Shown: positions 1 to 57,678 of the stretch, piece after piece
Layout of the letters: each line of letters opens with the position of its first letter
How positions within the stretch are numbered: position 1 is the first letter of the stretch
NCBI RefSeq assembly: GCF_052425735.1
Contig: NC_135769.1
Span: 30,194,001-30,258,000, forward strand
Direction of reading: 5' to 3'
Length of the DNA: 64,000 nt
Source: Oculina patagonica
Lineage: Eukaryota
Translations under genes and position numbers: made by a program
Notes under the pieces: generated by a model
The model's database searches: none
What the model was told of the DNA's origin: nothing
What the model saw: only the letters and a program-made list of their open reading frames with translations

Positions 1-1869
1 GAAAGTTAACGTAATAAAGAATGTCTTTCTTGCATTCGGATCAAGGCGCAAAACGGCTAGCAACTTGACACCTTCAGGAAAATAAGTCATGTTTTTGTGC
101 AAGTCAGGTTTGGGCATAAAGTGGAATTCCAATTTCTTTAACCTTCAAGGAAAACAAAAATTGGTTCAATCGGAAATTGAGAGCTCGAAGTTGGCGTCGT
201 ATCGCCACCAAGTAGGCAAAACTTAATATATAGAAATGCTATCACTTCCATTTTTTTGTAGATATAAATCTTTCTTCAAATCATGCCAGTTATGTTTACT
301 CAACTACGATAATGGGTGGACGGCTATTGCCTCTTTTCAGCCTGAAGACTGTTCTTTTAAAATGTCATAATTTTTTTTGTGCTTTGTTGGTAGTTGTATA
401 AAGTATGTCAGTTAAAAAAACTGATTTATTGATTAAGGTCTTACAGTTGGGAAAAAAATAATGCGTTGCAAAAACAAATCGAGTGGGAAGTGTTTCTAGA
501 AAAAAACGAAAACTTTCCCAGATATTCTTGAATAGATTATTACACACATGATAAGATGAGTCTTTTTCCGGTTGTACTACAAAAGTTTAATTGAAAACTA
601 GAATCTTTGCAATGTCACTGGCTTGCCAAATGAGTAAGGGAAACGCTACTAAAAGAATAACATTTGAACAAAGTGATGTTGCGTTGCAGAATATTCCTTC
701 AAACACGAGCTCATACTTTAAATTCACTAAAGTCGTATATTATTTTTTTTATTTCGCAATATTGTTTCCGTTGAGTTGGTTGGCATCGACCCACGTTGAA
801 GTTTTAGCTTTGATACCAGATATGAAACTGCCAGAAGGGTAATATTTTTATTTTTGACGAGTGACCCCTGGATTTGCTAAAATTTTGCGATTTACACGTA
901 GTTGTTGAACGACCATTCACTACCCCTAAAGAAGGAAATAACAATTGTCGCAAAAGAAGGTTTTGGTGAACAAAACTCAGGAAATTGGACATTTTAAGTC
1001 TTTGTGGGATTTATTAATGTCGGTCAGTTCATTAGTCGTTGTTTGTTTTTTCCAAATTGGAAAAAACTCAGTGTGTCGGCTAGCAAACAAAACAAGTCAT
1101 TAAGTATTAGCAGTGCCGGATTATTTCGACACCGATGTCTAGTTAGCGCTGTGTTAGAATTTTAAAAGAAGATGAATCAAAAGTTCGCTCTCCATTCTGT
1201 TTGCCACACACTCTTTTAAAATTGTAGTCCTGGTAAATCAGTGGCACATCAATATACCTGTTTTTAAGTTGACCATTTTTTGGTTGTCGTTCTTGTCACC
1301 TGTCTGTTTGACATTGGTTGATATTGTTATTACTAAATAAATTTCCATATTATTATTTTCACACATCCGTACATTTTCACAAGTCTGTACCTTTTAAAGC
1401 CACGCGGTTGTTCGTCGGAAAAAAAAATATAGTATAGGTTATAGGGGGAGAGGGAGACGAAGATTAGATTTGTAGGTGGTAGGGTGAAAGTTCACTTAAT
1501 TGGAATATGAGTTTTATTTACTTTATTCTTTTTTTCGTGCTACATTTAATTTAAGTTAATTCGGCGAAGGAAAGACGCCCGAAAGGCGCTAACCGTTACC
1601 CTAAACCCTAACTTAATCACGAATAAAGACTATCTTCCTTAAAACACGAGTCACGTTTATTGTTTGACCATTTCACGAATGATGCATTTAATCATTACTA
1701 AAGAAAATGAGCTTTGAGCTGATTAGTTAATTTTTCTGGAATTTACCTATCAATAGCCTAGTGGCAAGGCTTGGTCTCTCAGGCGAGCTGACAGCTCGCG
1801 ACATTTTGGTTTTATGATTCGCGCCGTTTGTCAATTTCGCTTTACTTCTCTGAATGGGAAAACTCATTA

Positions 1870-2124
1870 CTGTCGATTGACACCTGTGAACGACGCGCGA
1901 AACTGCATGATGTCACGTAGCGGGTGACGAGAGAGTGACGACGGGAACAACATCGGGAAATGGGGAAGAAGAAAGAACCCGAGAAACGATGCGATCGGTC
2001 GAAGCAACACAGGACGAATCAGTGAAGCGCCCGACAGTGGGTGAGAGAGGCAAAGGCGCGCGGCAAACCACAGGACAGAAAGGACGGACGGAAAACGGGC
2101 GGGCACAGGTAGAGCAATCGACAG
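1870..2124. other. T-depleted GC-rich segment bounded by ~22-bp imperfect inverted repeats (MITE-like, TA flanks)
   Basis: Left ttactgtcgattg-ac-acctgtg versus reverse complement of the right end ttactgtcgattg-ctct-acctgtg; interior strongly A/G/C biased. Confidence 0.55.
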
Positions 2125-3753
2125 TAAGTATTCCGTCACTGTTGTTTCAAATCAGTGTTTTACACCGTGATTAATTGAGGCCTACTTAGTCTCTCCTGGC
2201 TCAACGATTAGCGGTTTTATGAACAATAAATGCTCTCAAACCGATAGAACTTTAAATTGTTTATTTTAAGGTAGATAAACACCAAAGCAGATAACAAATT
2301 TACCAAAAATAGTATGCCTAGCGCGCTTTTGAATGTAGAAAAACATTAACCCATTGGTAATGAATTTCTAAAAGCAATATATTGACTGAAATCAAAAACA
2401 TTCACCAAAATTCATATGTAAAAGCAACAGAACTTATAAAAAACGCATAACGATGTGATAGGTGGATTAACACGTCGCGATTCGTGTTGAAGTCATGGCG
2501 TAAGCGGTCATATGCGATAACCGTGGGCGAAATTGTAACGTCAAATAAGCCTCTTTGAAACATAGAATATATTTTTTTTTAATGGGAAATCACAAAAATT
2601 AATCTAGCCTTCCAGGATAAAAACTCGCATGAGCCCGAAAGAAATGCAGTGGTGTTGACTAATAATATATGAGAAGTCCCTAATTATTTCAGATTAAAAA
2701 GTCATAAACTGAGACTTTTTACGGAATAATTACAATGTAAGTCATTTTAACTCACATCGTATTGCCATCTTGTGTAATAATCTTCAAAAAATGAGAGCTG
2801 TAAAATGAAACAATGAACCCTTCAAGATCCATGATTTGTATCAGTTTAGTTTTACTATTTTTATTGCATTTTTTAAAATTAAAAATTTAACAAACCGAAT
2901 ACCAACATAACTTAGCAATGATCAAGCTTAATGTGCAAACCGACAGAAAGTCTGAAGTTCTAAAGACTGTTTTTAATTATTTATGGCAAAATTGTCCTCA
3001 GGTAAAAGATAAAAATATAAAACGATGCAAAGTAGTTGTTATTTGTCATTTTGTCGCAAAATGTGCTTCAGACTCGCAAAGTCTCTTATAAGAGATTGAG
3101 TCATTTATCAAAACATGAAAGAGAATAAAACACCATGATTACCGTACGTTCATTCGGCCTTCTTTCTTCCCCGAATTGCCTTAGCTTGCCTTGGATCAAT
3201 ACGAGTCAATAAGTCGACATTTGCACAAGACAGATTAACGTTATTATAAAAGCTGTCATCTCGATGGCTTGTTAAACACGGCAGCTGCTTCAAACTGCTC
3301 AATGTGTATGATCACAAGACCATCACAAAGTCTCGGATTACCGGTACTTAAATTGAGAGTTTTGTATTTTATTATATAAGCGAGTCATTAAAGTCTGTCA
3401 GTGACAAATTTACACAGAAAAACACTGATGTACAAAATGAGCTCTTACCAAACGGGTTTATTAACTGTCAGTTAATAATCTTATTCTGCATATTTTTTAC
3501 CTTTTGATTTTAATACAGAGGCGTTTATTTCTCACGTTGGTCTGTAAACTAAAGGAGAGTAAGGCCATAGAAAGGTAAGTGTAACTAAGGAAGTATAAAT
3601 TAAACCAACTTTCATGTAATGAAGAACAATTGTTCAGAGGGATAAAATAAACAATAAGATGCATGAGAAAACCAAGGCGCTGTTTTGAACCTTCCACTTA
3701 TCGTTTATGTGAGTTCGGTTAAAGTATATGGCAAATGCATAAAATCATATTAA

Positions 3754-4887
3754 GCGGAAATCCGCCAGGACTTCGAGTAGTTATTGGACAAAATTATGTA
3801 CCAAAACTATTTACACCTGATTGCAAGCTTTTGTGTTACTGCTTCAAATATCTTATCGAAAGAAATCTTTTCTAACAACACCACACATCGAAAACACATT
3901 TTGAAGTTCCGCTGAATTCCACTGAATCGCTTAAAAGATGTAAGCTTTTGCCCATAGCTTGTGAACTTTAAATATCATTTTCTCAGACTCGGATAAGAAA
4001 TTGTTGTACCAGAATTATTTCCACCTTATTGCAAACTTTTTTGTTACTGCTTCAAATATCTTATCAAAAGAAATCTTTTCTAACAACACCACACATCGAA
4101 AACACATTTTGAAGTTCCGCTGAATTCCACTGAATCGCTTGTCATGACAGAACAATGCCCACATGCACACGAGAAGACGCGAGAAGCGGAAAACGAACGA
4201 AGAGAAGGCCACGAAACGGGACGACAGGAAGGAAGGAGGAGGACGATGGTGGAAGACGACGCAGACGAACGACCGCACGACGGACGACGAACGTCGAGAG
4301 AACGAGACGCCCGGACGACGCAGCGCCCGCAGAGAGGCCCAAGACGAAAGGCGTGGGAAGCAACGCAGACGAATGGGGGAGAGGACGGCGAGGACAGAAA
4401 GACGGAAAGCACGGCAACGCCACGAGCGAGAAAGAGACCGGACAGCGGCACAAGAACGGACGACACAAAGCGAGCAGCGGGACGAACACGACGGCACGAG
4501 ACGCGACCACACACACCGGCGGGCGGTCGGCGGCGCCACAATGACGCACAGCGACACCGAGCGCCACGAAGAGGCGGCACACCGCGAGATGTCCGAACTG
4601 AACTCGGGAATGGGCCAACACGGGGCAAAAAAAAAAGAATCTGTTTTGACCTTTAAGACGAATATACAAAATGGCTACACGTGAGATTTTTCCTATGCCT
4701 TGTGAACTTTGAAATTCATTTTCTCAGACTCTGATAAGAAATTGTTGTTGGTGTTATCACGGATAATTACTTACATCTTTACCTTTTATTAAGGGTAGGA
4801 AATAACGCAATAGGATTTAAATTATTCTGGAAATTGATTTTTGTCCAACTTTAATAAATATTACTCGACTTCCTAGTGGATTCCGTC
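3754..4887. mobile_element. Kolobok-like non-autonomous DNA transposon, copy 1 (carries a ~510-bp insertion)
   Basis: TTAA on both sides (3750-3753, 4888-4891); imperfect TIRs gcggaaatccgccagg / cctagtggattccgtc; internal ~208-bp tandem unit; near-identical to 33766-34385 apart from the insertion. Confidence 0.75.
4141..4650. other. T-depleted insertion inside the Kolobok-like MITE
   Basis: Absent from the sister copy at ~34152. Ends gtcatgacaga / tctgttttgac (9/11 inverted match) with ctt on both flanks. Almost no T on the + strand. Confidence 0.8.
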
Positions 4888-5419
4888 TTAAGCTCTTACG
4901 CTATATCCAAAGCAAAACTTTTGTTTTCTTCTAGCGAGTAATTTTCCTTATCAGTAGTGCAAACAAGACTACTGGTTTATTTGTAGCTCTCGTATAAATA
5001 TAGCCGATGCTTAATAGATACTTTAAAAATTGGTAACTTTAAATGCTGTGTCCTCGGTTCGGATCTGATCCAAAATGTGACAAAGTCTCGGTGTAAGAAA
5101 TTTGTGTTGTGTCTCCTCTCTGTCATTTCAGTGTTGCTCAATGAAGTCGTTTGTGGAAGAAGAAGACTGAAAGGATTGTTAACGAAAATTTTACAACGCA
5201 AACTCGTTCATATGCAATAGTCGTTACAAAGAACTAGTCAGACACAAACAAAATCTACATTATTAAGAAATAAATTTACTTATCAAAAAACTTGGGTAAA
5301 CGATGAAAAGGTGAATAAGAGCATACAAAAACGGATGGGAACAAGGACATGCACACTCTTAGTTCTTAACAGTTTTCGTATTGTGATTTATTTAACATGT
5401 ATTGCAGTTTAACACCACG

Positions 5420-8400
5420 ATGTCGCTTTACACGGACTCAGACGCAGCCCAGATTGGCATAACCACAATGTTCTCCATTCTTGTGAGCACAGACCTGATC
5501 GGAAACACCATTGTCTTCCTTGTGATTATTTTGAACCGAGATATGAGGTATTTTTCCTGTTGTGAAATAAAAATGTGAATAGCTTGTGCTTTTCGTTAGC
5601 AATATCTTATTTTTCAAGACAACCGTTAATTTCCTTAGGTTGTTATATATTTTGAATGAAAGAATTCTCTAAATCAGATATTAAGTAATTATTGGATGAG
5701 GCTGAGTACGATATGAAGAATTATGCAGATCAACGAGGGTGTTATCCGCCGAAGCCGAAGGCTGAGGTGGATAACACCCTCTGAGATCTGCATAATTCTT
5801 CAGATCATATGAAAGCAGAATTCAATAATTGTTTTATTATTCATTCAAAATATTTCCAGAGCCCCAAATGCACAAACTGAATTTAATAGAGTTTTGACAG
5901 TAGACAAAGTACACAAATACACAACAACGTTCGCTTTTAAATTTGATTTAAACTTCAAAAACTCGGTTACCTTCATTAAATTTCTTGTCCTTTATAATGT
6001 CGATATTTAGCACTTGCTTGAAGTGTCTATTGAAGCTAAACTGATGAAACAAAGCGATGTTTTCGAGTACAGGTTTCCATCGTTCTTGCTTAATACTTCG
6101 ACGTAGAATTTTCGTAAAACCGCTCCAAGTCCTCCGCTGTGGCTGGATCAGGGATCTTTCCCTCTTGAAGATACGCTTTCAAAATCGATCGACTCCCCTT
6201 TGTTCCTTTTTCCATGTTGTGACTTTCCTTGTCTTCTAATAACTTTAAATTTTACCTCTTCGTAATGCTCAAATCTAGCGGCCATTTTCGCTTTTCAATT
6301 CAGTCGCGTGACGTCAGCGGTTCTTGGGAACGAGGTTGCGATCGGATAATCATCCTTGAAAACGAGGTTGCGGTCCAATAATTTTTCATATTGGACAGTT
6401 GCGATCCAATAATTGGAATTTCCTCCAAATTTGGTCGGTGCTAGCCGAATAGCTGGAATTAGCCGGGGATCGAAAGCCAATCAGAAACACAGAAATATTT
6501 TGAATGAATAATAATCATTCTTATTCCATTCCAGCTCTCCATTTTTGCTCCGTAACCTCTCTCTTGGAGGTTGTAAAAGCACATGTACCTTTTAGTACAT
6601 GATGAACGACTCTCCATTTTGCAAATCCCTACCTCTTGCTCCGTAAACCTCTCCCTTGGACGTTGTAGAAGCACAGGCACCTTTCTGTACACGCTGAACA
6701 ACTCACCTTTATTGCAAATTCCTACCACAAGCAGTTAGAAAATTGAAAAAAAGAAAGAAAATTCGATTGAACCTGCAGTTGTGTTTTCAAACAGGACTCC
6801 CATGAACATTCTACTACTGAACTTAGCTGTGGCAGACATGATGGTTGGCTTATTCATCGCACCACGCTTCATTTTGATTCACCTTTTCAAACATCCAGAC
6901 GGACTGACCGGTACGATGTTCTGTAAGCTGCTGACTGGAGGTAACTTGACATGGACTGGAGGGGCCTGCTCGGTGTTCACTCTGGTGGCCATCGCTTTTG
7001 AACGCTACTATGCCGTGATGTATCCGTACGGAAATAAAGGAAAACTTACCTACAACAAGCTGAAGGTACTTACTTGTTAGACAATAAAAACACTGGAGTA
7101 AAAGATAAACAATTTTTTATGTGTAAAGCCCCTAAGAGACATTTTTTTATTAATTTCACCACACACAGAAAACTACTTCAAAATACTATTACTAACACAG
7201 TTCACATTACAATTTATTACAATATATTCTTACAATACGACCACTTGCGCTAATTATACTTTAAAAATAAACGTATGCGCTACTTACAATACTGTTATTC
7301 ACACTGCTATCCATGCCATTTTTTACTCTACTTACAAAATTCCGGATAACGAATTTTTCTTAAGAAACAGGGGGGAGATTAACATTCCAGATTGAAATGA
7401 ACAGTTGTAGAATTCAAAAAGCCATTTTATGAATTATGTTTTAACAGATCATCATCCCTTTGTCATGGATTTCCGCAGTGATCCTCAACATCCCTTTATA
7501 TTTGACAATCTACTTTGATAAAGAAGCCGACTTCTGCATGGAATATTGGCCGAGTCCAGAATGGCTTCCCAAAGCTTACAGCTCCACCTGGTTTTTTGTT
7601 GCCGGCATCATTCCTGCAACGATCATGACTGTGTTGTACTCGAGAGTGGTGTATTCATTGTGGTTCAAACGAGGAGAAAACAATCCAGAGAGCACCCAAC
7701 AGGTATGTATTAAAGAAAGAGAGAGAAAATCTTCCGCTTTCTCATCGCTTTGACACAGAATCACGGGAGGAAATTTGGAAGAACGAGAGATGACGCATAA
7801 AAACATGAGCCTCAGGCGAGTGTTTTCACGCCGTTTTCGAGTTTCCCAAACCTACAGGAGTGTTCCTATTTCATAATAAGACTATTCGCTCTTGATTTCT
7901 ATAGAGTGAGTAGATGAATCGGTCTGACTCCAATATGAAAAGGAGGAGGATGCTCGGTGTCTTGCTTAGGGTTGTACATTAATTAGGGATTTTGGTCTCA
8001 CTCAGGAGGTAGCGTAGAACGCCAATTACTTTTAGCCGTTTAGTTTCTTCGTGGGTGCCACCTGGAGAAGACAACGCGCCGTCATAAAGAAACCACGTTC
8101 AGTGTGCAACCGCCGACCCCCCTCCCCCACCCGGGGGATGCTGAAAGAAAGGACCGAAAGAGGATCGCTTGAAAGAACTCGTCTAGTCTTTGTAAACCAA
8201 CCAACAAGTTTCTTCTTATTTTCTTAGGGTGTGATGAAAGTAAGAAAGAGAGTCACCAAGATGGTCTTGGCTGTGAGTATCATTTACGGACTGTGCTGGA
8301 TGCCAAACCTAACCATCTATGCACTGAACTACTTCAGTCCTTCGCAGAACTATGGTGATGTCACCTACATTACTTCCATCGTTCTGGTTACATGCAATTC

Positions 8401-8620
8401 CACTGTAAATCCTTTCGTCTACGTATTCGTGAACCAGAAGTTCAGACGCAAGATGAAGAGTTTGATATGCTGTGGCAGTTTTTGTAACAACAGAGTCAAC
8501 GTACCAAGTGACTCGACTAATTACTCGAATGACCACACTAATACAATCACTCAGCCCACCGTGGAAGAAGAAACTGGTCTTCGAGCGTCTAACCGCGAAC
8601 CGACCGCCTTATTAGATTAA
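5420..8620 (+). CDS. Class A GPCR paralog 1 (neuropeptide-receptor-like), 4 exons, ~348 aa
   Basis: Exons 5420-5547, 6795-7065, 7448-7702, 8228-8620, all GT-AG, intron phases 2/0/0, joining in frame (1047 nt). Motifs: TM1 GN, TM2 NLAVAD, TM3 C...ERY, ECL2 Cys, TM6 CWMP, TM7 NSTVNPFVY, helix 8 FR plus CC. Confidence 0.93.
5683..6515. mobile_element. Non-autonomous repeat with terminal hairpin and asymmetric inverted repeats (Crypton/Helentron-like) in intron 1 of paralog 1
   Basis: Long palindrome at ~5687-5830; ttattattcattcaaaatatttc (5834-5856) is inverted at 6492-6514. Confidence 0.6.
6536..6727. repeat. Degenerate ~90-bp tandem duplication
   Basis: ttgctccgtaa(a)cctctc(t/c)cttgga(g/c)gttgta(a/g)aagcaca... 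occurs twice in succession. Confidence 0.65.
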
Positions 8621-14661: not shown

Positions 14662-17350
14662 ATGTCGCTGTACACGGATTCAGAGACAGCCCAGATTGGA
14701 ATAACCACAATGTTGTCCATTATCGTAATCACAAATCTTCTTGGAAACACAGCTGTATGCTTAGTCATTGTATTGAATAAAGATATGAGGTATGTTATCG
14801 GCTTTAAAATGAAACTATGCGGATGTACGTTATTATGCTTTGTCTTTGCTGTAGTATGTTTGTCACGACACTGATTTTCAAAGACTGTATATATTTTGAA
14901 AGCTTATGGAAGTCGTATTAATGAAAAACCAATTTTATGCTGTGGTAGCGATTTTTTCGCAACATAAACGTCTGGGGGGGGGGGGGGGGGGCGGTGCTGA
15001 GCCCCCAAAAAGATTTCGTTTGGGGTCTACAGCCCTCTACCCCTGCCCACCTGTTAAAAAAAGAAAGATATGAGACACTCCGGTCTTGCACAGAAAACTA
15101 GAAGCAAAAAAAAAAAAAAAAAAAAAAAAATCGCGAAGCTTCAAATTAGCTACCCCCCCCCCCCCAAAAAAAAAAAAAGAAACCACCACTACCGCCACCA
15201 CATCATTTGTAATGAACAATTCCTTTGTATAGAGGCAATGGTCCAAATTCGTGTCATTGCCGGTATTTAAACACACAAACAGAATTTTTATTGACAGCTA
15301 CGGGACTCATAATTGCTGCTACCATTACTACCATTTCTAAACGTTGTTTTTTTTTACCCGAGATTTTTACAGCTGTAAATTGTCATGCGCGTTGTCCTTG
15401 TAATCAAACAGGACTCCCATGAACATCCTACTACTAAACTTGGCTGTGGCAGACATGATGGTTGGCTTATTTATCGCACCACGCTTCATTTTCATTCACC
15501 TCTTCAAACATCCCGACGGACTGGCCGGCAAAGTGTTCTGTGAGCTGCTGACTGGTGGTAACTTAGCATGGTATGGGGGAGTTACCTCGGTCTTTACTCT
15601 GGTAGTAATCGCTTTTGAGCGCTACTATGCTGTGATGTACCCGTATGGTAATCGAGGAAAATTGACGTACAACAAATTAAAGGTACAGCGTATGTTAAGC
15701 AGACACGGTGCTTTTATACGAAAACGCGCTATGGCACTTTTGACGCTTTTGGATGCGGCGCTTACTCCAGGGCCAGGTACGCGCTAATACTGGGTGGGGC
15801 AGCAGGTACGCGCTACGATGTGTTGAGAAGTGTGGTGCTTATGTGAGGGTGCCGCTTCAGCGAAGGGGGAGCTTATTCGAGTAAATGCGCTTTATAACTA
15901 TTGAGCGAAACTAGATGTTTTATTTGAACAACGCGAAGGAATGTAACGACGTAAAAAAGAGTTCTACATAAAATACCTCATTTTATTGATACAATAACTA
16001 TGTTTGGTACACGAATAAGGCTTAATTTCAGTAGTAAAGGTCGTCGCTCATCAGGTCTCTCCATCAAATGTCTGAGAAAAAAAAAAAAAACAGGATAACA
16101 ATCACTTTGGGCTGTTGCTCGAGTATCTAGTTTTTTCTAAGCCACATCTGGAGCGGAATCACGCCGAAGTGATATTATCCACAGATTGCATAGTCCTGAA
16201 AACTGAAACTTTTACTCAGTGATCATCACTTTATTTATGATAAATACCACCTAACCATGCTTAAATATTTCGTCAACAGATCATTATTCCTACCTTATGG
16301 ATCTCCGCAGCCATCCTTGTCAGCCCTCTTTTCCTGACGATCTATTTTGACCAAGATGCCGACTTCTGCATCGAACACTGGCCAGAACAGTGGCTTCCCA
16401 AAGCATATAGTACCATCTGCTTCTTTTTTCTTGGTTTTATTCCTGTGACGGTGATGACCTTGTTGTATTCCAGAGTGGTGTATTCACTGTGGTTTAAAAA
16501 AGAAGATCACGATTTGGAAAACACCCGACAGGTATAATAATATGATTCCATCAATATAAACACTAACGTTCCAAGGACGTTTTGAGATGATATGCTTAAA
16601 TTATAACCCATTTGCCATGTACGTTTTATAGAATCGGACTTTATTTTGAAATTGTGCTTATAAAGATTATGATATAACATCTTTGGTGAACTACCCATCC
16701 ACACTGAAAAAAAAAAAACAACAACAACAACAGACTTTGGGTAAAATATTGTGCGTCACACTTCTGAACGAAAACAGTCATAGTCACCTTAAGTATGTTA
16801 ACAAATACAGTCTGATTACACTGAGAGACAAGGACAAAGTCTTGCAGTAATAAATCACCCATAAGTTGCAATTCAACCTAATATATATGATTAATATATA
16901 ATTTAATTGACCAAAAACGTATCTTTTTACCGTTTTTTTCGTCAGGGTGTGATGAAAGTGAGGAAACGTGTCACCAAGATGGTTCTTGCTGTGAGTGTGA
17001 TTTATGGATTGTGTTGGATGCCAAACCAATTCATCTACGTGTTTAACTATTTCCTTCCTTCACAGAACTACGGAGATGTCATCTATATAGTTTCTATTGT
17101 CCTTGTTTCGTGTAATTCCACTGTGAATCCTTTTATTTATGTCTTTGTGAATCAGAATTTTCGACGTAAGGTTAGGAGCTTGATATGCTGTGGAATGCCT
17201 TGCAGTAGCAGGGTTGAGGTCTCCACTGACTCTAATAATAATACGAATGATCACACCAACACCAGTACTCAGCCAACCCGGGAAGGGGTAAATTGTCAGG
17301 GAGAGCCTAACCAGCAAGCAAACCCCTTGGGTCTGATTTCCGTGGCATAA
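14662..17350 (+). CDS. Class A GPCR paralog 2, 4 exons, ~351 aa (closest to paralog 1)
   Basis: Exons 14662-14789, 15412-15682, 16280-16531, 16946-17350; GT-AG; in frame (1056 nt); GN, NLAVAD, ERY, CWMP, NPFIY motifs. Confidence 0.93.
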
Positions 17351-23732: not shown

Positions 23733-26700
23733 TACTCACTCACTCACTGCCCATTGTGCCCACTGGCACGTAGGGCAGCAACAAAGGTCCTCCACTGCTG
23801 TCTGTCTTTGGCCAGCTGTTGGATGGTGTTCCAGCTTTGGTTTAAGCCCCTCAATTCTGTCTCTACTGTACGTCGCCATGTATTCTTGGGCCTGCCACGC
23901 TTGCGCTTTCCTTCAGGTGTCCAGTATAGTGCTGTCTTTGTGATGGATTCGTTTTCCTTTCGGATGACATGGCCAATTCACCTCCAGCGCCGTTGCATAA
24001 TAATAGTACCCATGTCCTCCTGTTTGCACCGCAAAAGTAGATCCTTGTTGGAAATTGTTTGAGGCCAGAAGATGCGAAGTATTTTTCGCAAACTTTTGGT
24101 ATGGAAGGTTGACAGCTTCTCTAGATCACTTTCTAACATTCGCCAACATTCTGACCCATACAAAAGGGTAGACAGGACACAGCTTTGATAGATCTTGAGC
24201 TTGGTATGTGTACTGTACTGTGATGACCGCCACACATTGCTCAGCATCCTGAAGGTGTTTCTGGCTTTGTTCAGCCGGCTCTGGATATCTATGCCTGCAT
24301 CACCATCTTGCCTGACAATGCTGCCCAGATATTTAAACTGCTTGGTCATTGGGAGGTCTTTTCCATTCACCTTGACGGGCTGAGGGTTAGAGTTGTTTAG
24401 GGTCATGACCTCAGTTTTGGTGAGGCTGATGTTCAGTCTCACCTGGTGAACGTATTTGCTTAAAAGGCTGGTCTTCTCTTGCATGTGGCTATGGGTATGA
24501 GAAAGCAGAGCTAAATCATCCGCAAAATCTAGATCCTCTAAGGTGGAGAAGAGGGTCCACCTGATGCCCCTGGGATGGTCTTCCGTAGTACGACGCATTA
24601 CCCAATCGATAACTAAGTTGAATAGCAATGCAGACATCACGCAACCCTGTCTTACGCCTGTCTTCACCTCAAAACTGATATCACTGTTCTCTACGCTACA
24701 AGGTGAAGGCTGCATAGAAGCTCTGGATAAGTTGCACAATCTTCTGGGGAACACCATAGGCTCGAAGTATGCGCCACAAGCTGTCTCTGTGTATACTGTC
24801 GAAAGCCTTTTGAAAATCTACAACGTTTATGTACAGCTGCCTCTGCCACTCGGTGCACTGCTCGATGATGTTGCGTAGTGTGAATAGTTGGTCTGTACAA
24901 CCCCTACCCCTGCGGAATCCAGCCTGTTCTTGCCTGAGCTGCTGGACTACTGCACTCGAGATTCGTTGGATGACAATCTTTGCCAGGATTTTACTTGGAG
25001 TGGACAGGAGGGTGACGCCACGCCAGTTATTGCAGTCACTAAGTGGACCTTTCTTGTGGATCTTTATGATTGTACCTTTGGTCCAGTCATCTGGCACCTT
25101 CTCCTGCTCCCACACTGCAGTAAACAGGGGCTGTAGAATCCTTGCTGAAAGTTCAGGGTCAGCTTTGAAAAGCTCTGCATTCAGTTTGTCTCGGTCAGGA
25201 GCTTTGTTGTTTTTTAAGGTTTTTATGGCTGCAATGATTTCCTGCGTGTTTGGAGGATCTATGTTCACATCCAGGTCGGTCTCAGCCTCTTGAATGTCAG
25301 CTTCAACTGTGGGTGGAGGTCTGTTGAGGACATCCTTAAAGTGCTCTGCCCAACGAACTTCCTGATCTCTTTCGGTGGTAAGCAGCCTACCCTGTACGTC
25401 CTTGACAGGGGCCAGCTTTCTGCCCCCATACTTGCCGCATACCAGTTTTGTGATTTTGTAAACCTTTCCCTGCTGTCCTCTGTTGGCTGCATTTTCTGCC
25501 TGGCTAGCAAGCTCATCAATATATGCGCGTTTATCAGCTCTGGCCATTCTCTTAACACATCAGTCAGCCTCTCTGTACTGGGTCTTTTAGCGCTCTTGCA
25601 ACCTTTCTGATTTGGTGTCAAATAGTTTCTTCTTCAGTTTTCGTCTGTCCTCGATGGCTCTTAAGGTTGCTGGCTTTATCCACTTCTTTTTTCTTTACAG
25701 CCTTCTTAAAACCTAAACATGCATTGCTGCTCTCTGTGAAAGTGAATGACACTTGCTTCCATATATTGTTGACCTCATCAGGTTCAGGTTCAGATTCGGG
25801 CTCATCAGACAGAACCGCCAAGGATTGGAATCGATTTCTAAGCTGAGTGATGAAGGCATTTCTCACTGATTGCTCTTTCAAGTTGTCTATGTTGAAGCGC
25901 TGGTTGCATGGTGGCTTTCGACCAGTGCTTCTTAGTTTCAGCTTAACATACGCCGTGACAAGGTGATGGTCACTGCCAACATCTGCCCCTCTTCTCATCT
26001 TAACATCTAGAAGTGAGCGTCGCCATGTGCCATTAATCATCAAGTGATCAATCTGGTTCCTATCTCTACCGTTAGGAGAGCACCATGTAAGCTTGTGAAT
26101 ATCACGGTGTGGGAAGATTGTTCCTCCAATGACTAGGTTGTATGCTGCACACAGTTCGGCAAGACGTTCTCCATTTTCATTCATAGTACCACAGCCTTCC
26201 TTTCCCATTGCTCTGTCATAGCTCGAATTATCACTTCCCACCTTTGCATTAAGGTCACCCATTATAACCAGCATGTCATTGCGCGGTAGTTTCCCCAGTT
26301 CTGCTTGCAGTTGTGCATAGAAGCTGTCTTTTGTGGTGTCATCGCTGTCATTCGTTGGTGCATAACATTGGACAAGGGACAGGTTAACATGCTTTCCCTT
26401 CATTCTAGCTGTCATAAGTCTGCTGTTGATTGGTTTCCACTCTAATAGGTACTTTTCCATTCCTTTCTTGAGTATGATGGCAACTCCCTCATGGTGTTGG
26501 TTGTCATCTCTGCCAGCATACAGCACAGTTTCTCCTGTTGATGTTTTCACTATTCCAGAACCTGTCCACCTGCTCTCACTAACTCCTAGAATATGTAAGC
26601 AATAGCGCCTCATTTCAGCTGTTACTTGTGCCAGTTTTCCCGTTTGATACAGGGTTCGCACATTCCAAAAAACCTATTCTGGTCTTAGTCTTTGTGCCTA

Positions 26701-47962: not shown

Positions 47963-50900
47963 ATGTCTCTGTATAAGGATTCTGACGCAGCTCAGATCGC
48001 CGTAACAACTGTGCATTCCTTGCTGGTTATCTCGAACATCGCTGGAAACGCGCTGGTCTGTGTTGTCATACTGAAGAATCAAGACATGAGGTACGCCGTG
48101 AACCCGGTGAAAAGAAATTTTCGAAATTATGTAATACAATTTATTTTAGTTCTAAGAAGAACTGTTGTTGGTGACTGACGTTTCGACAACCTGAGCGGAA
48201 GTCATCTTCAGAGTCAAGTGAAAAGTTGTTGTCAGTCGATGATGTTATAAGTCTGGTCCGTTGATGTTGATTGGTCAGTTTAGCCGTGATGTTATTGGCT
48301 GTAAGACTCGTGTAGAGTTTGTCGACAGTAATTGGTCAGTTAGTCAAATTAAGTCGTTCTGTTGGCGGTCCGTTTGTCGGTTCTGTTTAAGTCGTGAATA
48401 AGTCGTTTGTAAGGTGCTGGTAGCTGTTGACATCTGTTTATAGGCGTTTGTTCTTAGTTTGTGTACCAGCTTTCCAGAGTCAGTCGTTGAAAATAGTTAG
48501 TACTGTAGGTTAAGCATTCAGCAGAGTCCCAGTCGATGTTGCGGTTAGTAAGTCATGTATAAACAATATCATCGACTGACAACAACTTTTCACTTGACTC
48601 TGAAGATGACTTCCGCTCAGGTTGTCGAAACGCAGTCACCAACAACAGTTCTTCTTAGAACTATTCTCACCCGGACGATCATACTTTACGACCTACTGAT
48701 ACTCCTAGGCTCAAACCATTTACTATACAATCTATTTTCATCAAAATTTTTTCTTTCTTTTTTTTTTTTTGTACGGGCAATTATCTTGGGAATCAGAAGA
48801 AAAAGTGTGTTGTCCGAATCTGGATAACTGAAAAATGCATATTTCAAGCTTAGAAATGGAATTCAAATGTTCCTTCAACCAAAGATTAGGAAATATTTGT
48901 AAATTTCACTTTGAGTATTAACCCTTAATTATAAGAAGAGTTATAATGCTCTCATACATTCATACATTTGGGAACTGAAGTTTTCTTAGGTGACATGTTA
49001 CCTTGAACGTACGTTTTCGATATCTAATTGCCGTTTTAAGGACAATGAAGGCCAAGTCCTTTTTTTTTAGAAACACAACAGCAGCTCGTTCATGTACATT
49101 AGGGCAAATAGATTCGTTCCCTTGATCAAAGTGTTTTAGTTGAAACAGATTAGGAGGGAGAATTTACATCCGATTTCATTGGTACGTGTATAACAACTAT
49201 CTTTTGACCTCCTTTTTTCGACTTGCTTAACAAACACGACGGATCTAAATCCACCAATCACAGCCCACTAGCATCGCTTTCGAACTTGTGGCTCATTTGA
49301 AAGAAACCAACATCGGTATGCATCTGTTTTGATTGGCTCATTTCAAACAGCACGTCAAAAGATGGATGTTGCAATTGAGAGAAAGCCGCTATGCATGTCA
49401 CAATGAAAGCGGGTGTTATTGTCACCATAACCCGATTTTCAAAAGTATCTCGTTCACGTATAATTTTTTTTTCGACTAATAATTTTTTATTGCAACACAA
49501 ATAATACTAATACTTGCAAATTTTCAACAGGACTTCAATTAACTACCTTCTGTTGAACCTAGCTTTCGCAGACATGACGGTAGCAACGTTTTTCATACCA
49601 CAGTACATTTTTACCCACGCTTTCACCCACCCAGACGGGGTCGCTGGGGACGTCTTCTGTAGACTTCTTACAGGCGGAAACTTGGCATGGGTTGGAGGAG
49701 CTTGTTCTGTTTTCACTCTGGTTACTATCGCCATTGAGCGTTACTACGCGGTGATGTATCCTCACGGTAACAAAGGGAAGCTCACCAACAACAAGCTAAA
49801 GGTGTTTTACGACACGTTTTACAGTGGAAAGCTTTAAACAGTACTTAGTTTACTTATCTTCGAATGTTTTGTAATGCCGTTTATGATTTACTTTGACGTT
49901 TTTCTAAATCTTCAAGCTTACAATAATAATTTGTTTATTTGGTTATATTGTGATATGCGCCAGGAGACGTGCTATTCGTCTTAAAATGTTATTTAATCTG
50001 AATGCAGAACAGACGGATATTTTTTTTGAGTATAAATTTCATTCTTTCACGAATAGAAATGATATATATGCCTTTTCCTAATTTGATTTGTTTTGTTATA
50101 AGGTCTCATTATTAGTTAAAAATCCAAAATTCATATTGTCATTACGACTCTTGACTGCAGGGAGTTGTTACACTCAGACAGATAACTCGCCTTCTTAAAC
50201 GCTGGGTAATAATTCTTTACAATAGGAGAAAGTTAACTCTTTAAAGGTGCAATTTTAATAATTTGAGAACAGAATTACCTACTTATGCTTTAAATTTAAG
50301 TTATGGAAATATGTGCAGCATCATACATTTTCCTATTTCGTCGTTGCAGGTGATCATACCTTGTTCATGGATGTTTGGGGTGCTCATGAATACTCCCGAG
50401 TTCCTGGTTAAGAACTACGATAAGGAGCAGGATTTCTGCACTCAGTTCTGGCCTGATGAATGGATGGGAAAGGCCTATGGTGTGGCGTGGTGGTTGGTGC
50501 TTGGAGTTTTCCCTGTTATACTGATGGCTGCCTTGTACTCGAGAGTCGTGTACACTTTGTGGTTCAAACGTGAAGGGTCCAATGAAACCAATACCCGACA
50601 ACAGGTGAATATGTTACCGGCAGTGGTGTTTTTGTTGCGACATGAGAAAACTTCGTTACGTAATGAAACAGCTCATAATGTTTTTCTCTTGCTGTTTGCA
50701 TAGTTTTAACAACTTTTACTGTACTCAGTACACCAATTTATCTCTACAAGTAACAATTTAAAAGGGGACTTTATGTGAACATTTAAAGGAAGAGTATTGC
50801 TATGAATTTCCCAAGCAAATGAAGTGGGAGACGTCTGCACGCAGACTATGAATTAAAATTCTTCAAAGCATGCAGTTGGGTAATTCGCGAAGCGTGTGTA

Positions 50901-54852: not shown

Positions 54853-54950
54853 GCGACCTTCCGGTCCATAAAGGAAAACTATGCTTTGAATTATAATAGC
54901 TCTTCCACCAGTTTACTGAGACTGTATGTTTTCGTTATTTTTATAGCTTC

Positions 54951-57678
54951 ATGATGACTCTGTTCGCGGATTCAGAAACAGCTCAGGTTGCCATAGTAAC
55001 TGTTCTTTCTATCCTTGTCATGGTAGACGTCATCGGGAACACCCTTGTTTGCATTATCATAATGAGAAATCAAGACATGAGGTATTTCGAGGTTCATAGT
55101 GTAATGCTGTGAATTTACTTTTCAGAAAAAAAAAAAAACTTACCATCGTGTTCGTGTAGTATTTTAAACAGCTTTATTAGCTTTATTAGCTGTGTAGGCC
55201 TTAGCCTAGGGACAAAAGAGATAATCTCGAGGAAGATTATATTAGTCTGAAATGAGATGACAGCTGACATTTCAGACTAAAGGAAGGTTTACATCATTGG
55301 TAATATTAAATGGATCCCATATTCGATATTACTCAAAAAGCGCAGTTAACTGAAAAATAGCTCGCAATGGATGGTCTGATAGGCTAGATGAATAATATCA
55401 AGTAAGCTTCATGCCATTATACAAGGACCACTCTGAAAAGATTACCCGCAATTGTAGCCGGATCCATTGGTGTAGCTCAGTATCAGTCCAATACCGACTT
55501 AATAACGAACTTTAAATGCTGGACTGATCACACGGGGACGATGTTAATCAAAGATTTTGCACAATAAGTTGGTTATATTAAAAAAATATTGGGCTAACAT
55601 CGTTTATAGTATAATCTCTAGTGTTTGAAAGCCACGCATTTAAAGTTTGAATAAAAATCTCGGTTATTCGACTGACAAATTCATGGACTTGAATCCTGCT
55701 TTGACTTGGAATTAATTGATATTTATCATTATGCCGTTGAACTAATATTTCCAAATCCAAATCCTATAGGACTCCAATGAACTATCTTCTTGTAAACTTA
55801 GCAGTGGCAGACTTAATGGTAGCGACGTTCTTTGCACTAATGCACATTTTCATCCATACGTTCACCCACCCCGATGGTGTCACAGGAACAATGTTCTGCA
55901 AATTTTTGACTGGGGGAACCTTCGGATGGGTTGGAGGTGTCTCCTCATCCTTCACGTTGGTTGCAATCGCCACTGAGCGGTACTATGCTGTCATTTATCC
56001 CCATGGTAACAAAGGAAAACTTACAAAGAGTAAACTGAAGGTGTGTTCAAAGGTTTATTGGTATCGACAGAGTTCCTTGACCGTGATTTATTTTAAGCAA
56101 TATAGCTTTTAAATGACTTCTTCCATATGTCAACCGGCTTATCCACTACACTTCCAGCTTTACAATACTAAATAAGTTTAAATTAATAAAACATCAACCT
56201 ATTATTTCAAGCTAAAAATACAAAAGTATTCCAGTCTAGCTATATGTAGAGCTCTGATAAACAATGAAGACATTTTTTTTATCTCATTTCTTCATTATTT
56301 ATTAAATAAACTTTTGATGCAAATATCTAGTTGTTATGATAATTTTTAAACGGTGAGTTATAGTTATTTACTTTTCACGAAACACAACTAGCGCGTTCTT
56401 AGTTTGTATTACTTGCTAAAAAGATATTACTATCTTTCACTTGCATTTTTGCGAACGTGATTTTATTAATTCTCCGTTGCAGGTAATTATTCCCGCCTCT
56501 TGGATTTTTTCTTTGATAATAAATACCCCAGTGTTTCTGAGCATGAAATTGGATAACACGATCGCCTCTTGCCTTGAGAAGTGGCCTGAAGAGTGGATGG
56601 GAAAGGCCTTTAGTATGACGTGGTTTCTTACGTTTGGAGCTTTCCCCATAATGATGATGATTGCATTATACTCCAGAGTTGTGTACAGTTTGTGGTTCAA
56701 GCGTCAACACAGCGAACTTTCGCTTCAACAAAGGGTAGGTTAACAATACCACTGTCATTAGATAGGCCTTTTCCCGAACAGTGTCACATTTAAAACTGAA
56801 AAATGCGTAATGGAATTAGAAAGATCGCTGATTTCATAGCCTGGCCGACGTTCAAAGAGGAGGGAGAAGGGGAATTCCGATTGCGCTTCGCGCTCTCTCC
56901 TCGCACCTCGCGCTTCACGCTCGAACTCCCCTTCTCCTTCCCCTTTGAACGCCGGCCACGCAGGCTACTGATTTCAAGGCAACATCCAGCTTTTTTCCAT
57001 GCGATTCTTCTGAATTTTTTGTACTCGAATAAAATGTTCTGTTAGCAGTCTCAAAAATGTTACACTCACTAAAACCATCACGACGTTTCCATTTCATTTA
57101 TCATCTCTACTTCCAGTGTCAATAACTAGCAGTGAGACATGGAGAGGGTGAGGGGATTAAAACGTATTTCATAGGGCATATTGAACCTTGGCGTGATTAG
57201 ATCCTGGCCTGGATAAGAATATTTGAACTTTACATTATTAATGTGGTTTCAACAGAGTCGGGAACAGTAACTTGAATCAATGGCATTTATTCATAACAGT
57301 TACATGAATCACGCTTCTCTTTTTTCACAGGGTGTGCTAAAGATACGGAAGCGAGTCACTCTGATGGTCGTTACAGTGAGCACTATCTTTGCAATCTGTT
57401 GGTTGACTGACGGAGTTATCTACATCTTGAGCTATTACAGCACCACCAATCGCCCAAACGATGTTACGTATGCCGTCGCTTTCACAATGATCTTGTTCAA
57501 TTCTGCCGTGAATCCCTTTGTATATGCTTTGGTAAATCAACGGTTCAGGGAAAAGATGAAAGGAATGTTATGCCGCACTTGCCGCCATACAAACAGGATT
57601 CATTCCACGAGCCGGAGTGATGAGCACGAAGCTGGCTCTGATAGTAACGTCGCTCACCCGACCCAAACGGTAGAATAG
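54951..57678 (+). CDS. Class A GPCR paralog 6, 4 exons, ~333 aa
   Basis: Exons 54951-55081, 55770-56040, 56483-56734, 57331-57678; GT-AG; in frame (1002 nt); GNTLV, NLAVAD, ERY, TM6 CWLT, NPFVY. Confidence 0.92.
56837..56967. mobile_element. Palindromic MITE with TAG..CTA ends and a 9-bp TSD (AcademH-like)
   Basis: TSD ctgatttca at 56828-56836 and 56968-56976; tagcctg...caggcta ends; self-complementary interior. Confidence 0.8.

Follow-up and report, generated by a model that had tools for sequence, protein, structure and literature searches.

Polymerase theta, which acts in end joining, is reported to switch among three copying modes (random, snap-back and in-trans), to lengthen single-stranded DNA by over 100 nt in vitro and to favour dATP, with no dTTP exclusion reported; its insertions in vivo only occasionally exceed 25 bp (PMC4912351). 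Its products resemble the two sequence islands described here in their random-looking inserts, short snap-back inverted tracts, 2-3 nt microhomology and junction-adjacent mutations (PMC4912351), but usual insertions in vivo are shorter than the islands by a factor of 10-20, the islands exclude one base where the enzyme prefers dATP, and at the larger of them (island A) the target shows no loss. Given these large differences, we say only that the islands work like filler and claim no membership in that class. N-nucleotide addition by TdT at V(D)J joints is also template-independent and GC-rich, and it takes place at a processed break, sometimes beside palindromic nucleotides; the coral tract differs in being heritable and 0.2-0.5 kb long. 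N regions measure a few nucleotides and are somatic, and TdT is an enzyme of jawed vertebrates. No eukaryotic process is known to yield 0.2-0.5 kb of untemplated germline DNA.

Other described systems are alike in other respects. MITEs and further non-autonomous TIR transposons are small, end in terminal inverted repeats, have a short target duplication and can be found inserted in another repeat. Unlike these, the islands have no second copy in the sequence analysed, islands A and B differ in their termini, and their composition is unmatched by the surrounding DNA. Retrocopies hypermutated by deaminases (APOBEC G-to-A or ADAR A-to-G clusters) have also nearly lost one base on one strand, but the statistics of the islands misfit an edited sequence, no source was found in the window, and near-complete conversion would be needed. 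Natural reduced-alphabet DNA on one strand is known from irregular telomeric repeats (yeast TG1-3) and from the T-poor cryptogenes of kinetoplastids. The former are made from a short RNA template and draw on a small k-mer set, and the latter are mitochondrial and restored by U insertion; the islands, in contrast, have a large k-mer set, and the locus is a nuclear MITE.

Here, we analyze a window of 64 kb (the whole stretch of DNA under study, 64,000 nucleotides) from the stony coral Oculina patagonica, in which a sequence-only reading had pointed out an almost T-free insertion.

Results

The insertion and its junctions

The window is AT-rich (31% T, 38% G+C, CpG o/e 0.95) and contains rhodopsin-type GPCR genes in a tandem cluster, several transposons and a single tRNA (35898-35974); MITEs and other TEs are abundant in this host DNA. 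The GPCR exons near the islands are open and intact, indicating that base-level quality is good. Island A interrupts one of two MITE copies in the window (Table 1). The MITE has a TTAA end, a feature common to Kolobok and other superfamilies. Beyond the two copies (3750-4891 and 33762-34389) the flanking DNA is unrelated, and the copies are therefore independent insertions; they have diverged by only 1-4%. As proposed in the sequence-only reading, the window also contains the empty site: the sister MITE is unbroken, and both halves of the interrupted copy match it closely.

Two readings of the junctions differ by a single base. On the empty copy, the two MITE halves aligned by blastn have TT (34151-34152) in common, which gives a gap-free reading with a 512-bp insert (4141-4652) and a 2-bp TT duplication. 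The earlier claim of a CTT on both sides stands in that CTT is present at 4138-4140 and 4651-4653, and this reading makes the insert 510 bp, exactly arm to arm (4141-4650), but it needs an extra T at 4654 that the gap-free reading with TT avoids. TT or CTT is the microhomology common to both junctions, and no MITE bases were lost at the insertion. The insert is bounded by an 11-bp imperfect inverted repeat, as had been noticed, whose arms pair at 9 of 11 positions (P ~1.2e-3 by simulation with island and genomic 16-mers). The first 8 nt of the left arm, GTCATGAC, form a palindrome. The A-run seen earlier near the 3' end is an uninterrupted A10; 14-16 further inserted bases lie behind it, which rules out a terminal poly(A) tail. 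Directly past the junction, the empty site reads ACGGCGAA. We rejected a match of the last 14 nt of the insert to 3680-3695 (CTGTTTTGA..CCTT), as T-rich words give equally long chance matches elsewhere in the window.

Differences between the filled and the empty copy are concentrated on one side of the insert. The last 66 bp of the left flank before the insert are identical to the sister MITE, and most right-flank differences form a cluster immediately 3' of the insert (P = 1.5e-4 within the right flank, 8e-6 across both flanks). Four cluster sites can be polarised by the internal paralogue of the MITE (3940-4007), and three of these are derived in the filled copy. The clean left flank and the cluster on the right together place the errors 3' of the island on the T-lacking strand, and this one-sidedness fits 5'-to-3' synthesis on that strand.

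Table 1. Coordinates of the islands, their ends and the MITE copies in the 64-kb window.
Feature	Position	Strand	Description	Basis
Island A, inserted DNA	4141-4652	+	512 bp; 510 bp if the duplication is CTT; missing from the sister MITE	
Three-letter core of island A	4161-4630	+	160 A, 127 C, 170 G, 13 T; 68 CpG	
Duplicated target, left copy	4138-4140 or 4139-4140		CTT (4138-4140), or TT (4139-4140)	blastn overlap and sequence
Terminal inverted repeat of island A, left arm	4141-4151	+	GTCATGACAGA	
Terminal inverted repeat of island A, right arm	4640-4650	+	TCTGTTTTGAC; sole T-rich part of the insert	
A10 run	4627-4636	+	Near the 3' end of the insert	
Substitution cluster	4653-4704	+	Holds 8 of the 10 sites where the right flank departs from the sister MITE; free of indels in the gap-free (TT) alignment	
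Host MITE, left part	3750-4140	+	TTAA end; 98.7% identity to 33762-34152	
Host MITE, right part	4653-4891	+	95.8% identity to 34151-34389	
Host MITE, 30-nt terminal inverted repeat	3750-3779 / 4862-4891			Repeat search
Host MITE, internal 208-bp duplication	3790-3932 / 3998-4140			Direct-repeat search
Sister MITE	33762-34389	+	Unbroken at the homologous point 34152/34153 (empty site)	
Island B core	1889-2103	+	16 T in 215 bases, 10 of these before G	
Island B, left inverted-repeat arm	1867-1888	+	13 perfect bases, 2/4-nt bulge, 7 more	
Island B, right inverted-repeat arm	2104-2127	+		Repeat search, alignment

Composition of island A and a second island

The base composition of island A is 35% A, 27% C, 35% G and 3% T over 4141-4652, with 176 A, 135 C, 177 G and 22 T counted from arm to arm (4141-4650). 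Its core contains 13 T in 470 bases against 31% T in the window (binomial P = 3e-57), and its CpG o/e is 1.48 against 0.95 window-wide, bearing out the description of a T-poor, GC- and CpG-rich stretch. Long ORFs in all six frames had also been reported; they measure 129-182 aa and stay open because stop codons require both T and A. We reject coding sequence, as there is no codon periodicity (phase composition P = 0.2) and three frames have no protein relatives.

A scan of the 64-kb window for stretches poor in one base returned only two GC-rich cases, island A and a second one, island B. Island B is about 215-260 bp long and lies ~2 kb from island A, and it is T-poor on the same (+) strand. 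TA stands at both outer ends of its inverted-repeat arms and is a candidate duplication; no empty site for island B was found within the window. An 11-mer match of one of its arms at 48322-48332 was discarded, the surrounding sequence being unrelated.

The interiors of the two islands show no similarity when aligned on both strands (local score 27 vs 25 +/- 4 for shuffles), and their dinucleotide o/e ratios are nearly equal. In islands A and B, respectively, these ratios are 1.42 and 1.39 for AC, 1.45 and 1.38 for CG, 1.31 and 1.16 for GA, 0.56 and 0.56 for CC, and 0.79 and 0.79 for AG; AA, CC and GG are all under-represented. A first-order Markov chain is the best model by BIC for both islands. 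Across the two, C is followed by G in 51-56% and by C in 14% of cases, and G by A in 43-47%; for island A the transitions are 0.56 for C to G, 0.47 for G to A and 0.14 for C to C, and the step from A to C is enriched as well. Interiors that cannot be aligned and follow near-equal dinucleotide rules point to a common generating process, not to common descent.

Both islands contain few homopolymers (lag-1 autocorrelation z = -4.8 in island A), and their autocorrelation is unremarkable at longer lags, with z = 2.5 at lag 3. The commonest 4-mers of island A are ACGA and GACG, and 312 of its ~435 6-mers are distinct. TRF detects only two weak arrays in it (34-42 bp, periods 7 and 15, scores 40-45), the 7-mer array being at 4256-4297. 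Together with the flat autocorrelation, this agrees with the earlier statement that island A is not a tandem repeat. The same reading had called it a random three-letter sequence, which is nearly right: the sequence is non-repetitive, near-random and unlike a normal TE interior. It is more exactly a three-letter first-order chain, with no periodicity and with no relatives found in our searches.

The few T that remain have a distinctive context. T is followed by G at 9 of 13 sites in the core of island A and at 10 of 16 in that of island B, versus 36% expected (P = 0.016 and 0.03), and core T never stands before A or T and never after C. With 68 CpG still present, the MITE lineage diverged by roughly 1-2% and CpG mutating ten-fold faster, a rough estimate predicts ~9-10 T in the core of island A, where 13 are observed. 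The residual T are as expected for remnants of CpG-to-TpG decay in an originally T-free sequence, and the agreement between rough estimate and count suggests that the original sequence was without any T and that the block aged in the genome alongside its host MITE.

Searches for a template or relatives

Plain and short-word blastn identified no template or source in the 64-kb window. Searches of the window under T>C, T>G, T>A and T-deleted alphabets gave scores equal to those of shuffles, as did an ungapped scan in which T in the template was treated as a wildcard; the unedited source for which a search after C-to-T collapsing had been suggested is thus not found in the window. Neither island, nor their ends, has a further copy within the 64 kb. 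At the protein level, the ORFs at 4144-4653 (+) and 4163-4681 (+) have no relatives in a collection of 5.8 billion clusters, and the ORF at 4083-4628 (-) has none among 1.84 billion representatives. With Rfam, neither the gathering thresholds nor a relaxed cut-off of E = 5 yielded a match; hammerhead (retrozyme) and tRNA-like SINE are among the readings rejected. RNA folding compared with shuffles gave z = +0.31 for the + strand and a marginal z = -1.85 for the - strand. We reject structured RNA, as the + strand folds no better than shuffles, the - strand is marginal and Rfam is null. One 24-mer of island A, a weak test, was missing from metagenome, prokaryotic-genome and viral contigs, and blastn against plasmids and phages gave no match to island A. 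A literature search on T-free tracts, long untemplated germline insertions and the genome of this coral returned nothing relevant.

Discussion

Every point-mutation, deletion or repeat model that we tested fails. Two possibilities then stand for the block: it was synthesised without a normal template, or it is an error that raw reads alone could reveal. Our best reading, which we put forward tentatively, has the + strand synthesised independently of a template at a break, its ends formed by snap-back. Island A would then be a real germline insertion, and island B probably likewise, with interiors that would not have been copied from ordinary genomic sequence. Synthesis would start from a break or from a disengaged or stalled nascent 3' end on the + strand, where a polymerase would add several hundred nucleotides without a normal template, using dA, dC and dG only. 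Each base would be chosen mainly by the one before it (G after C, A after G and, in island A, C after A as well). The new tail may subsequently fold back on its own start and copy ~11 nt (island A) or ~22 nt (island B), generating the terminal inverted repeat, and re-anneal to its original partner via 2-3 nt microhomology, whereupon templated copying would restart at low fidelity for ~50 nt. Later, some CpG would turn into TpG and account for the sparse T of the present sequence. Separated by 2 kb and affected on the same strand, the two islands could, as a matter of speculation, stem from one episode of faulty synthesis on one nascent strand. From these features we infer a polymerase, a break, this order of events and the lack of a template anywhere in the genome.

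We rank untemplated synthesis above a TIR element, two of the four candidate origins that the sequence-only reading had listed without preference. Islands A and B could be small non-autonomous TIR transposons of two families, whose T-free interior came from a strand-biased non-coding region of their parents or is filler from internal deletions in those parents. Island A does span exactly arm to arm between its two CTTs with the target intact, and an exact inverted repeat with a 2-3-bp duplication and no target loss is the classic mark of transposase integration and not of end joining, which commonly loses bases. Island B has its 13+7-bp inverted repeat with TA at the outer ends, and MITEs and other TEs are plentiful in the host genome. 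We nevertheless regard this origin as less likely. The islands share neither termini nor interior, yet have the same unnatural composition; the 64-kb window contains no second copy of the islands or of their ends; and the ORFs in three frames are without protein-database relatives. Such an origin also leaves unexplained why the interior lacks T and why substitutions cluster on one side. A hybrid is possible, in which the terminal stubs of two transposons are linked by de novo filler in abortive gap repair.

Less probable still is an assembly or basecalling artefact, with the noise of one long read, maybe over a hairpin, entering the consensus. It would explain why two blocks within 2.7 kb are poor in T on the same strand, and why they look unnatural, with three letters, first-order statistics and scarce homopolymers. 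The inverted repeats flanking both islands could mark real hairpins, mismatches do cluster beside island A, and the one probed 24-mer was absent from the public sequence searched (metagenome, prokaryotic-genome and viral contigs). Several features of the locus nonetheless weigh against read noise. For the 66 bp up to the junction, the left flank and the sister copy agree at every base, the right flank shows only substitutions and no certain indel in the gap-free alignment, and the neighbouring GPCR exons are open and intact. The ends are sharp and accompanied by a duplication, and the residual T stand in a CpG-decay context in about the number roughly estimated for a T-free sequence of the age of the MITE.

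The sequence-only reading had also suggested a hypermutated retro-copied RNA (A-to-G on the minus strand), which we now consider very unlikely. Here, adenosine deamination of the minus strand, or of the cDNA in an RNA:DNA hybrid, would produce T-to-C changes on the + strand, or the change would be another T-to-X. Deaminase hypermutation does deplete one base on one strand, and the A10 run lies close to the 3' end, although it is not terminal. Core T, never before A or T and never after C, has neighbours that resemble the neighbour preferences of ADAR read on the minus strand. T-to-C editing, however, leaves G (36%) and A (34%) untouched, and no 470-bp window outside the islands reaches these values; the maxima among 542 genomic 470-bp windows are 34% G and 66% purine, and these probably come from windows overlapping the islands. 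After T/C collapsing, the island is 70% purine, with a YY o/e of 0.58, below all 542 windows (minimum 0.79, median 1.05). Converting the common TT to a single base would enrich the homodimer of that base, whereas AA, CC and GG are all low. A fully edited coding sequence is expected to contain ~23% Pro-class (T-to-C) or ~30% Gly-class (A-to-G) residues, as estimated from typical amino-acid frequencies, but the six frames give 0.6-6.4% of the relevant residue (Pro in +, Gly in -). Hyper-edited normal sequence, coding or not, is rejected on the G and purine content, the YY o/e and these amino-acid classes. Editing would moreover have to approach 100%, and the window contains no collapsed-alphabet source.

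Least probable of all is a decayed (ACG)n-like microsatellite or cryptically simple sequence expanded in place by slippage: the enriched steps AC, CG and GA, the top 4-mers ACGA and GACG, the weak 7-mer array at 4256-4297, the lag-3 z of 2.5 and the ACGGCGAA past the junction of the empty site recall such a sequence, but the 512 bp have no overall tandem structure (312 of ~435 6-mers distinct), MITE copies that are 1-4% diverged have not existed long enough for a repeat to become unrecognisable, ordinary decay would add T freely, and island B would require a separate expansion of the same kind.

That a germline process in stony corals writes hundreds of template-free three-letter bases into chromosomes, between snap-back inverted repeats, is a doubtful proposition, if a possible one. 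If real, the islands would represent at least a new, extreme variant of filler insertion, and a dedicated process would be categorically new. The locus offers an empty site in the same window, and island B provides an independent sample of the same statistics. Should reads fail to support the islands, they would show instructively how an assembly artefact can imitate a TIR- and TSD-bearing insertion. Real and untemplated islands would constitute heritable animal DNA never copied from anything, far longer than the filler at end joining or V(D)J joints. A coral polymerase activity would be implied, and its base-to-base preferences could be read from the islands. Such an activity would open a new route to raw sequence that is CpG-rich, stop-free and without ATG or GT on the T-free strand, and would thus be a natural source of wholly new sequence, possibly of new MITE-like elements.

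Island B and its surroundings

A second T-poor, CpG-rich island, island B (1867-2127), lies 2 kb upstream of island A, the T-poor block that splits the host MITE, and on the same strand. It is flanked on both sides by a 13+7-bp inverted repeat. Island B follows the same dinucleotide rules as island A, and the two share no sequence similarity. A short interstitial telomere-like run, two exact CCCTAA units with degenerate units adjoining, occupies 1586-1612, some 270 bp on the upstream side of this island. Such runs are sometimes telomerase leftovers at repaired breaks; this one may be a chance occurrence, the expected number for the window being ~0.01. The low-complexity tract at 39730-39842 is A-rich and T-poor (68 A, 15 C, 23 G, 7 T) and is of a different kind from the GC-rich islands A and B.

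Genes and other elements in the window

Rhodopsin-type (7tm_1) GPCR paralogues form a tandem cluster, apparently with a three-exon layout common to all copies; in the first copy, the exons are intact and the reading frames open. The coding part of the non-LTR retrotransposon is broken into three ORFs, and the element is therefore probably frameshifted. The tRNA-like sequence, which adjoins a 188-aa ORF (35265-35831) for which no Pfam match was found, may be part of a SINE.

Coordinates and annotation of features in the window
Feature	Position	Strand	Details
7tm_1 GPCR paralogues	6781-8620, 15404-17350, 36078-37784, 49521-50703, 54950-57678 and others	+	
Non-LTR retrotransposon	23978-26661	-	Endonuclease/exonuclease/phosphatase domain and reverse transcriptase
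tRNA-like sequence, single	35898-35974	+	ARAGORN: Thr, anticodon GGT; Rfam 33.4 bits, barely over threshold
Internal direct duplication, host MITE	3790-3932 / 3998-4140		Spacing 208 bp; 93-95% identity
Internal direct duplication, sister MITE	33809-33944 / 34017-34152		

Host MITE and sister copy

Compared with the sister MITE, the uninterrupted copy, the 66 bp directly 5' of the insert (island A) carry no substitutions, whereas the 52 bp directly 3' of it (4653-4704) carry eight, which are clustered. A C15 homopolymer (33341-33355) sits directly upstream of the region containing the sister MITE. Since the internal duplication is found in both copies, it is older than their spread.
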